Shown piece by piece: positions 45,600 through 49,000 of a DNA stretch of 64,000 nt. Position 1 is the first letter of the stretch. Every line of letters begins with the position of its first letter. This stretch comes from Ranitomeya imitator (lineage: Eukaryota). The translations under genes and the position numbers were made by a program. Under the pieces are notes generated by a model, which saw only the letters and a program-made list of their open reading frames with translations, searched no databases and was not told the origin of the DNA. The stretch is taken from NCBI RefSeq assembly GCF_032444005.1, contig NC_091289.1, positions 9,176,001 through 9,240,000 on the forward strand. The letters run 5' to 3'.

Positions 45600-46020
45600 G
45601 CCCATCTGATCGCCAGCAGCGCCTCCTCCCTGCTATCAATCGTTCTTGATGCCCAGCAGTAAGAAGCAGCTTATAGTCACCAGTCCTGGATGGGCGCAGC
45701 CATGTTTGAGCCTTGCAGAATCACGTGACTTGATCAGCGCTCCTGACTACGCATGCTCCCCGCATACCTGTCTAGTTGGAGCATGCGCTGTGTGAGCTAG
45801 GACACGGGGCGGGGCTCAGTATGGTAATAATCTCCTGTCTGTTGTGGTGACACCGGAGTCCGGTGAGCAACGGTAACGGATTCCTGAACCACAGAAAACC
45901 GGAGCCATGAGGGCCGTACCCACCTGGGTGGACAAGGTCCATGACCGGGACAAGGTGGAGCAGTGGTAAGGAGGCCGCGGGCGCTGCAGGCGGACCGAGG
46001 AGCTGCGAGTGCTTAGCAAC
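45600..46020. promoter_or_regulatory. Bidirectional CpG-island promoter for MBD4 and IFT122
   Basis: Head-to-head starts about 200 bp apart (45703 minus, 45907 plus). E-box TCACGTGA at 45721-45728, NRF1-like GCATGCGC at 45781-45788, RFX-like GAGCAACGGTAAC in the IFT122 leader. The MBD4/IFT122 head-to-head arrangement is known in mammals. Confidence 0.75.
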
Positions 46021-49000
46021 CAGTGGCTTCAGGTGTAAAAGTGCATAGCAACCGGGAGCTGAGGGTTCATGGGTGCCTAGCAACCAGATATGGAGGACTG
46101 AAAACTGCATAGCAACCAGGTACGGAGGTCTCAGGTGCATAGTAACCAGGTACGGAGGTCTCAGCTGCATAGTAACCAGGTACGGAGGTCTGAGCTGCAT
46201 AGTAACCAGGTACGGAGGTCTGAGCTGCATAGTAACCAGGTACGGAGGTTTGAGCTGCATAGTAACCAGGTACGGAGGTCTGAGCTGCATAGTAACCAGG
46301 TACGGAGGTCTCAGCTGCATAGTAACCAGGTACGGAGGTATCAGCTGCTTAGTAACCAGGTACGGAGGTCTCAGGTGCATAGTAACCAGGTACGGAGGTC
46401 TCAGGTGCATAGTAACCAGGTACGGAGGTCTGAGCTGCATAGTAACCAGGTACGGAGGTCTCAGCTGCATAGTAACCAGGTACGGAGGTCTGAGCTGCAT
46501 AGTAACCAGGTACGGAGGTTTGAGCTGCATAGTAACCAGGTACGGAGGTTTGAGCTGCATAGTAACCAGGTACGGAGGTCTGAGCTGCATAGTAACCAGG
46601 TACGGAGGTCTGAGCTGCATAGTAACCAGGTACGGAGGTCTCAGCTGCATAGTAACCAGGTACGGAGGTCTCAGGTGCATAGTAACCAGGTACGGAGATC
46701 TCAGGTGCATAGTAACCCGGTACGGAGGTCTCGGCTGCATAGTAACCACGTACGGAGGTCTCGGCTGCATAGTAACCAGGTACGGAGGTCTCAGCTGCAT
46801 AGTAACCAGGTACGGAGGTCTCAGCTGCATAGTAACCAGGTACAGAGGTCTCAGCTGCTTAGTAACCAGGTACGGAGGTCTCAGGTGCATAGTAACCAGG
46901 TACGGAGGTATCAGCTGCTTAGTAACCAGGTACGGAGGTCTCAGGTGCATAGTAACCAGGTACGGAGGTCTCAGGTGCATAGTAACCAGGTACGGAGGTC
47001 TCAGCTGCATAGTAACCAGGTACGGAGGTCTCAGCTGCATAGTAACCAGGTACGGAGGTCTCAGGTGCATAGTAACCAGGTACGGAGGTCTCAGCTGCAT
47101 AGTAACCCGGTACGGAGGTCTCAGCTGCATAGTAACCAGGTACGGAGGTCTCAGCTGCATAGTAACCCGGTACGGAGGTCTCAGCTGCTTAGTAACCAGG
47201 TACGGAGGTCTCAGCTGCTTAGTAACCAGGTACGGAGGTCTCAGGTGCATAGTAACCAGGTACGGAGGTATCAGCTGCTTAGTAACCAGGTACGGAGGTC
47301 TCAGGTGCATAGTAACCAGGTACGGAGGTCTCAGGTGCATAGTAACCAGGTACGGAGGTCTCAGCTGCATAGTAACCAGGTACGGAGGTCTCAGCTGCTT
47401 AGTAACCAGGTACGGAGGTCTCGGCTGCATAGTAACCAGGTACGGAGGTCTCGGCTGCATAGTAACCAGGTACGGAGGTCTCAGGTGCATAGTAACCAGG
47501 TACGGAGGTCTCAGGTGCATAGTAACCAGGTACGGAGGTCTCGGCTGCATAGTAACCAGGTACGGAGGTCTCAGCTGCATAGTAACCAGGTACGGAGGTC
47601 TCAGGTGCATAGTAACCAGGTACGGAGGTCTCAGCTGCATAGTAACCCGGTACGGAGGTCTCAGCTGCATAGTAACCAGGTACGGAGGTCTCAGCTGCAT
47701 AGTAACCCGGTACGGAGGTCTCAGCTGCTTAGTAACCAGGTACGGAGGTCTCAGCTGCTTAGTAACCAGGTACGGAGGTCTCAGGTGCATAGTAACCAGG
47801 TACGGAGGTATCAGCTGCTTAGTAACCAGGTACGGAGGTCTCAGGTGCATAGTAACCAGGTACGGAGGTCTCAGCTGCATAGTAACCAGGTACGGAGGTC
47901 TCAGCTGCATAGTAACCAGGTACGGAGGTCTCAGGTGCATAGTAACCAGGTACGGAGGTATCAGCTGCTTAGTAACCAGGTACGGAGGTCTCAGGTGCAT
48001 AGTAACCAGGTACGGAGGTATCAGCTGCTTAGTAACCAGGTACGGAGGTCTCAGGTGCATAGTAACCAGGTACGGAGGTCTCAGCTGCATAGTAACCAGG
48101 TACGGAGGTCTCAGCTGCATAGTAACCAGGTACGGAGGTCTCAGCTGCATAGTAACCAGGTACGGAGGTCTCAGCTGCATAGTAACCAGGTACGGAGGTC
48201 TCAGCTGCATAGTAACCCGGTATGGAGGTTCCTGGTCGTGGACTATTGATGTGGCCCGGGGGCCAAGATCATCTCTAAAGACCAGACAAAACTGATTTAG
48301 GACGTCCTATCGATTTTATCCAGATTCTTGACATTGGGAAATGCTTGGCCAGAGTATAACCCGTGGCTGTGGACAAACTACAACTCCCAGCATGCCACCC
48401 AAGGGCTGATTGTGCGTATTGTGGCAGCTATTCAGCCTTGTGGCTCTGTAGACAGCTATGTCTGGCAGGCACAGTGCCATGGACCTTAGTCCGGCATCCA
48501 CATCTAGGTTATAGGAAGGGAATAAGAATGATGGCAAGTAATGCTGCGTCCTCTTATTTTCCGGTAATGCTGCGTCCTCTTATTTTCCCGTAATGCTGCG
48601 TCCTCTTATTTTCCCGTAATGCTGCGTCCTCTTATTTTCCGGTAATGCTGCGTCCTCTTATTTTCCGGTAATGCTGCGTCCTCTTATTTTCCCGTAATGC
48701 TGCGTCCTCTTATTTTCCGGTAATGCTGCGTCCTCTTATTTTCCGGTAATGCTGCGTCCTCTTATTTTCCCGTAATGCTGCGTCCTCTTATTTTCCAGTA
48801 TTTATGACCTCGCATTTAAGCCTGACGGGACTCAGCTGATAGTGGCCGCAGGAAACAAAGTGTTGGTACGTAATAAGTGTATGAGAAGATATATCCATGG
48901 GGAAGGTTCACACGTGGCAGCGGGGATCCGCTCCATTCATGTGAATTGGGTAAACCGCGCATTAAACACACCGGAAAGGACGTGATGCTGCTTCTGTAAA

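Follow-up and report, generated by a model that had tools for sequence, protein, structure and literature searches.

Origin of a 30-bp minisatellite in intron 1 of IFT122 in Ranitomeya imitator: a probable seed in a small cluster of RFX-type sites

Introduction

Why should the first intron of a ciliary gene carry some seventy evenly spaced half-sites for RFX transcription factors? The question is raised by a 64,000-nt stretch of the genome of the frog Ranitomeya imitator (RefSeq assembly GCF_032444005.1, contig NC_091289.1, positions 9,176,001 to 9,240,000, forward strand), hereafter the window, in which positions are counted from its first letter. Within the window IFT122 stands head-to-head with MBD4, and intron 1 of IFT122 is occupied for most of its length by a 30-bp tandem repeat whose every unit includes a hexamer of the RFX type. 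An earlier interpretation made from the letters of the window (the sequence-only reading) held that a native cluster of X-boxes, the sites bound by RFX factors, had been amplified into a variable number tandem repeat (VNTR) that serves as an enhancer or as a sink for RFX protein and possibly tunes ciliary gene expression through its copy number. The analysis presented here favors a plainer origin. The array is probably a minisatellite that formed in place from a small native cluster of RFX-type sites, and its half-sites would be a by-product of the amplification.

Results

Cut in register from 46106, the repeat comprises 71 units of 30 bp in 16 variants (46106..48235, + strand) and starts 140 bp past exon 1 of IFT122. 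Tandem Repeats Finder delimits it as 46105-48229, with a period of 30, 70.8 copies, 2125 bp, 95% matches and no indels. RGYAAC, the right half of the X-box consensus, is found once per unit and always on the + strand, as AGCAAC in the first array unit and as AGTAAC in the other 70. The AGCAAC hexamers lie at 46015, 46047, 46079 and 46111 (spacing 32, 32, 32), the first three in decayed copies that precede the array, and AGTAAC then follows every 30 bp from 46141 to 48216. The monomeric RFX hexamer GTTRCY is accordingly present in 74 of 74 units, counting the 71 of the array and the 3 decayed ones. Two variants of the motif divide the array between them, CATAGTAAC in 59 units and CTTAGTAAC in 12. 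On this anatomy the sequence-only reading was accurate: a sequence search returned exactly its 9-mers at 46012, 46044, 46076 and 46108 and its two unit variants, and its count of about 70 regular half-sites in the intron corresponds to 71 units with one RGYAAC each.

The evidence for a seed comes from the left edge of the array. By unit alignment, three decayed 32-bp proto-units (A, B and C) fill 46010..46105 on the + strand, with starts at 46010, 46042 and 46074, and each begins with the 12-nt core TGCNTAGCAACC. When the three copies are compared with the first array unit, the core is identical at 34 of 36 positions, versus 34 of 60 for the remaining 20 nt with gaps allowed, and the contrast between the two parts is strong (Fisher 5e-5, binomial 5e-7). 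The 3' parts of C (P=0.005) and B (P=0.03) are homologous to the array unit, and that of A is not (P=0.30). This gradient suggests that the proto-units are old copies that have been decaying outward from the array while the core was spared. Elsewhere in the window only two matches to the core turn up, each with one mismatch and at the level expected by chance.

RFX sites of ciliary genes usually lie near the transcription start, and so does this cluster, the four AGCAAC cores (those of the three proto-units and of the first array unit) falling at about +145 to +250 from the IFT122 transcript start. Read on the reverse strand, the core gives GTTGCT, the RFX monomer recognition sequence. Two 11-mers of the core, CCTAGCAACCA and CATAGCAACCG, also occur in the DYX1C1 and DCDC2 promoter X-boxes, which bind RFX1 and RFX2 in gel and supershift assays and are required for promoter activity (PMC5024701). 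Candidate sites were scored with consensus and mismatch scans in place of FIMO with JASPAR matrices, taking GTTRCY as the RFX monomer site and GTNRCC N0-3 RGYAAC as the dimer X-box. Two full X-boxes with a single mismatch were found at the start of the gene. One, GGTGCC T AGCAAC, lies inside proto-unit C with its mismatch at position 2 (46072..46084, + strand), and the other, GTGAGC AAC GGTAAC, coincides with the 5' end of the RNA contig for IFT122 (45863..45877, + strand). X-boxes of this quality (one mismatch at most) thus number two in a 210-bp span at the start site and 11 in the remaining 62 kb, and a Poisson estimate for a 400-bp promoter zone gives roughly P=0.002. Inspection by eye, as opposed to a database comparison, brought up no factor that would fit the core better. 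We infer that the core is a putative protein-binding site, most likely for RFX, within a start-proximal region that controls IFT122 and MBD4; the chances that the four AGCAAC cores together represent a native start-proximal cluster of RFX-type sites appear to be about even.

The units that were amplified are poorer matches than their predicted seed. The mismatch scan of the 71 array units found none within one mismatch of the dimer consensus, and 12 units (GCTGCTTAGTAAC) match only the looser restricted consensus of the fly, GYTRYY N1-3 RRHRAC. In the fly, RFX dependence cannot be predicted merely from a degenerate X-box being there (PMC2375033). The only human X-box with GGTAAC to have been assayed, that of KIAA0319, was unbound in gel shifts (PMC5024701). 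RFX1-3 bind palindromes of two half-sites (PMC8287911; bioRxiv 10.1101/2024.09.24.614849), and the motifs under mouse Rfx3 peaks are mostly of the dimer form; it is RFX5 and RFX7 that typically use single half-sites. The amplified units are thus best described as weak, monomer-type predicted sites that may bind some RFX. The sole perfect X-box of the window (GTAGCCATGGCAAC at 24518) was discounted as an element of any promoter, since it sits in the gag-pol open reading frame of a Ty3/chromovirus-type retrotransposon; perfect matches evidently occur away from promoters too. That reading frame (21549-25643, minus strand) is an uninterrupted gag-pol of 1364 aa of the long terminal repeat type, with reverse transcriptase, RNase H, integrase and chromodomain.

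The regularity of the hexamer is accounted for by the way in which the array has evolved. A 331-bp block (47004..47334, + strand) has an exact second copy 540 bp, or 18 units, downstream in the repeat comparison, which marks a recent internal unequal exchange. Other long exact blocks inside the array recur at multiples of 30, and the string of 16 variants is arranged in a repeated higher-order order. The array has the properties by which minisatellites are recognized, namely a head-to-tail unit of 10-100 bp, a length on the kb scale and higher-order patterns of variants. Since 9 of the 30 unit positions vary within the array, six given positions would all be invariant with a chance of P=0.09, which leaves the constancy of the hexamer within the array short of significance. 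Other motifs recur in the same manner, an E-box (CAGCTG or CAGGTG) at the unit junction in 55 of the 71 units and the 5' splice-site-like CAGGTACGG (CAG/GTACGG) in 63. On RNA, the UAGUAAC of the array unit resembles the branch-site consensus. As for the proposed phasing at about three helical turns, it applies to the 32-bp edge copies, which are near phase at 3.05 turns, and not to the array, in which 30 bp amount to 2.86 turns of B-DNA and each unit drifts by about 51 degrees. A coding reading of the array was rejected: several frames are open, but the frame of exon 1 meets TAA at once in the intron and the RNA splices normally.

How much weight such regular sites can bear depends on the surroundings. 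About 32% of the 64-kb window consists of tandem arrays built on roughly a dozen unrelated units, in CAND2, RPL32, MBD4 and IFT122 alike, and the position of one array beside a ciliary gene is therefore uninformative. RGYAAC occurs 138 times in the window, against 128.8 +/- 10.5 in shuffles; outside the array it occurs 64 times in 62 kb, or about once per kb, and 3.2% of random 30-mers from the window carry it. Chance alone falls far short of explaining the repeat as such, but its sites are not independent. Being copies of one unit, the roughly 70 half-sites do not constitute as many separate events. In a genome of which a third is minisatellite, any array will display the motif of some factor in perfect phase, and a number of phased sites, however large, is not evidence of function.

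Several of the neighboring repeats deserve mention. An 86-bp satellite occurs at four places in the window and a 35-bp unit at two. In intron 1 of MBD4, a 41-bp array of 15.7 copies (44534-45162) stands between 26-nt inverted repeats (44473-44498 and 45309-45334) with 96% complementarity, and it looks like an element akin to a miniature inverted-repeat transposable element with an expanded internal repeat. Just past the 40-bp array of CAND2, one further copy of its core, CACCACTAGGGGGAGC, stands in flanking sequence that is otherwise unrelated (7784-7823), a second case of a core that outlasts its unit. No inverted terminal repeats were found flanking the 30-bp array of IFT122, and an Rfam search of that array returned no family and only a sub-threshold match to mir-205.

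The IFT122 array is present with matching flanks in short contigs from three related taxa (organism A, which is the source organism, and organisms B and C), and the array therefore predates their split. Contigs of organisms B and C contain the same promoter, proto-units and array units as well as the 3' flank joined to a unit, and their flanks are about 97% (B) and 93-95% (C) identical to the source. The read comparison covered the left junction of the array (45400-46330). Among the changes listed for organism B, one, at 46057, falls in the proto-unit region and lies outside the core, in a comparison of relatives that are too close to give it power. A second change in organism B, 45876 A>G, alters the second hexamer of the X-box at 45863, and that site is thus not conserved. 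In organism C some units have AGCAAC (46263 T>C) and one has AGTAAT (46236 C>T), so that conservation of the hexamer is not strict. For organism A, words belonging to rare variants with 3-7 assembly copies reach 3-5x the single-copy depth and the commonest words about 34x, depths that fit an array at a single locus. Summed word depth relative to single copy, which is not copy number, is about 34x in organism A, 265x in B and 62x in C.

The gene models around the array rest on RNA contigs. Exon 1 of IFT122 (45868..45965, + strand) reads MRAVPTW... from the ATG at 45907, and the 5' end of the gene is at 45868 or upstream of it. An RNA contig of organism A joins 45965 directly to the letters of exon 2 (48799..48866, + strand, from RNA contig and sequence), and the 2833-bp intron 1 between them (45966..48798, + strand), with GT at 45966 and AG at 48797-48798, is spliced out. 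A downstream exon matches residues 138-187 of human IFT122 with E=6e-29 in a single exon search. On the opposite side, a minus-strand RNA contig of the same organism places exon 1 of MBD4 at 45579..45709 (- strand), with the donor CAG/GTAATG at 45579, beyond which the contig continues into other sequence. Further minus-strand exons encode the methyl-CpG-binding domain, and the exons at 39442-40242 encode what we take to be the MBD4 glycosylase domain, as judged by regex motifs and likeness to the human sequence. The matches to IFT122 and to the methyl-CpG-binding domain come from searches with single exons. Together, the spliced contig, the IFT122 match and the head-to-head arrangement bear out the gene context that the sequence-only reading had assigned, with the array after exon 1 of IFT122 and beside a promoter shared with MBD4.

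That bidirectional promoter is the CpG-rich interval of about 158 bp between the two RNA contig ends (45710..45867, assigned to neither strand). The CpG observed/expected ratio is 0.64 across 45560-46009, and by eye the promoter has the housekeeping-type motifs CACGTGAC and GCATGCGC, a related CGCATGC and the GC-box GGGGCGGGGC. Two minisatellites account for 84% of intron 1, the 30-bp array for 75% and a second one for 9%. The second is a 26-bp unit in 10 copies (48538..48800, + strand, Tandem Repeats Finder) that adjoins exon 2 and is derived from the polypyrimidine and 3' splice-site region of the intron. AG stands at the end of its last copy only, the other copies finishing in CCGG or CCCG, which leaves nine decoy pyrimidine tracts upstream of the true acceptor.

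Discussion

The array is most readily explained as an in-place minisatellite, and the steps by which it may have arisen can be outlined. A native cluster of RFX-type cores near the start of IFT122, with a period of 32 bp, would have provided the starting repeat. A 30-bp unit, in which the hexamer had changed from AGCAAC to AGTAAC, would then have been amplified to about 70 copies (2.1 kb), by unequal crossing-over or by slippage, in a promoter-flanking region that is rich in minisatellites and prone to recombination. The RFX half-site in the unit would be a legacy of the RFX-type cluster that seeded it, and the amplified half-sites would be passengers with no selected role in enhancement, titration or dosage. 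Frog chromosome ends are known to have long, highly recombining regions packed with tandem arrays, which have been ascribed to unequal crossing-over (PMC10794172). PRDM9 has not been found in amphibians, and species that lack PRDM9 direct recombination to promoter-like features (PMC5519329). A repeat adjacent to a promoter would thus be a likely place for expansion in these animals. The proposal that a native X-box cluster was amplified therefore holds in part: the core is conserved in the 32-bp edge copies, one of which (46072) has a one-mismatch X-box, but none of the amplified units retains a dimer match.

Several points weigh against the notion that the amplified half-sites are idle passengers. 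The array and its flanks have been retained across three related taxa, and the hexamer is intact in 71 of 71 array units. The GTTRCY monomer is a recognized mode of RFX binding, some genuine targets have relaxed X-boxes in which the 5' half is weak, and enhancers can be built from clusters of low-affinity sites. With respect to the seed, the boundaries of the core were picked after the data had been viewed and the decayed copies number only three; the contrast between the core and the rest of the unit was judged too large for post hoc boundaries to explain.

One alternative is that all the units together form a homotypic cluster of RFX sites and work as an intronic enhancer of IFT122, and perhaps of MBD4, whose output is set by copy number. 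The features that favor it are the GTTRCY in every unit, the 12 units that fit the restricted consensus of the fly, the start-proximal position and the presence of the array in three taxa with word depths that apparently differ; in addition, human VNTRs can modulate neighboring genes. These features have to be set against the quality of the sites, since every unit departs from the vertebrate dimer consensus at two or more positions, RFX1-3 peaks hold mostly motifs with two half-sites, the amplified hexamer is the T variant seen in the unbound KIAA0319 site, and degenerate X-boxes predict little. The invariance of the hexamer is explained by homogenization, other motifs being equally regular in the same units, and the base rate of arrays in the window is very high. 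We consider an enhancer or copy-number dial made of 70 such units unlikely, and this part of the sequence-only reading did not find support.

It is also possible that the core has been kept for a reason unrelated to RFX, either because another DNA-binding protein recognizes it or because it is a recombination-promoting minisatellite core that survives and drives expansion. The core is conserved and its match to RFX is one of sequence; the core of the 40-bp CAND2 array likewise reappears in flank, and shared cores are a classic feature of minisatellites. Against this, the match to the right halves of validated RFX sites extends over 11 nt, hotspot motifs are expected to erode rather than persist, and inspection by eye suggested no factor that fits better. 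A cause of this kind is improbable as well.

Two further explanations are very improbable. The first is that the array belongs to a dispersed repeat or a transposon-borne satellite, as might be suspected in a window in which 86-bp and 35-bp families are dispersed and a 41-bp array is flanked by inverted repeats. The 30-bp array has no such flanking repeats, its 5' flank consists of exon 1 and graded, decayed units, it has no further copy in the 64 kb, and its word depth fits one locus. The second is a role at the level of RNA, in which the array would load U1 on the nascent transcript through CAG/GTACGG, a motif that matches the donor consensus at 7 of 9 positions, compared with 6 of 9 for the true exon 1 donor, and that is repeated in 63 units. 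The RNA contig shows plain splicing of exon 1 to exon 2 with only a trace contig within the array, and the motif may be a passenger of the amplification just as the RFX hexamer is. The proposed RFX sink, by which 71 co-oriented monomer sites in 2.1 kb would titrate RFX protein from its other targets, is scarcely credible, since a hexamer found about once per kb outside the array would number in the millions in a frog-sized genome, and 71 weak sites would not shift the level of free RFX. Taken together, the sequence evidence speaks against the enhancer, sink and dosage readings alike.

The premise that RFX factors drive IFT genes was only partly sustained for IFT122 itself. Mouse Rfx3 binds the Ift122 promoter, whereas the fly ortholog, oseg1, is unaffected in dRfx mutants (PMC2375033). 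The X. laevis Rfx2 direct-target tables that were consulted do not include ift122, although they do list WDR35, WDR19 and IFT140, and IFT122 is likewise missing from the supplements of PMC5838959. Control by RFX is thus not universal for this gene.

Comparison with known systems places the IFT122 array among ordinary minisatellites of a known kind, with an interesting seed. It resembles the gene-proximal VNTRs of humans (the INS VNTR, the HRAS1 28-bp minisatellite, the MAOA 30-bp uVNTR, SLC6A4 STin2 and TERT MNS16A) in its head-to-tail units, which span 14-40 bp in that group, its location in or beside a gene, its variant repeats, its internal unequal exchange and the presence of a transcription factor motif in each copy. 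It differs in being longer (71 units) and in residing in a genome that is locally one-third such arrays; for the human loci, unlike the frog array, copy-number polymorphism and debated effects on expression have been measured. The subtelomeric minisatellites of frogs described by Bredeson et al. 2024 (PMC10794172) are alike in their dense, unrelated short-unit arrays, unequal crossing-over and differences between lineages. Several of those arrays come from transposon fragments, unlike the IFT122 array, which comes from unique intron sequence adjacent to a promoter.

The X-boxes of ciliary promoters (DYX1C1, DCDC2, IFT88) offer a closer parallel for the seed, in which GTTGCT/AGCAAC is flanked as it is in validated human sites (PMC5024701) and which lies within about 250 bp of the start of an IFT gene. 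The canonical X-box is a single imperfect palindrome bound by a dimer, whereas the sites here form a direct repeat of half-sites in which a usable second half is present in one copy only, and the hexamer that was amplified is the weaker T variant. For the idea of an enhancer, the GGAA microsatellites bound by EWS-FLI1 provide a precedent, since each unit is a weak site and a whole array can be a response element. That case differs in its 4-bp unit, in the involvement of an oncogenic fusion protein and in having been proven by experiment.

It is conceivable, if rather far-fetched, that in frogs, which appear to lack PRDM9, start-proximal clusters of transcription factor sites recur as seeds of minisatellites, and that the IFT122 array is a lineage-specific set of low-affinity RFX sites, variable in copy number, that is bound in ciliated cells and modulates the output of IFT122 and MBD4. 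If site clusters adjacent to promoters did often seed arrays in vertebrates that lack PRDM9, the targeting of recombination would be linked to regulatory turnover, a generalization that one locus cannot show. What the IFT122 locus does contribute is the seed itself: four promoter-proximal RFX-type cores, apparently held by selection, that constitute a candidate control element for a ciliopathy gene.

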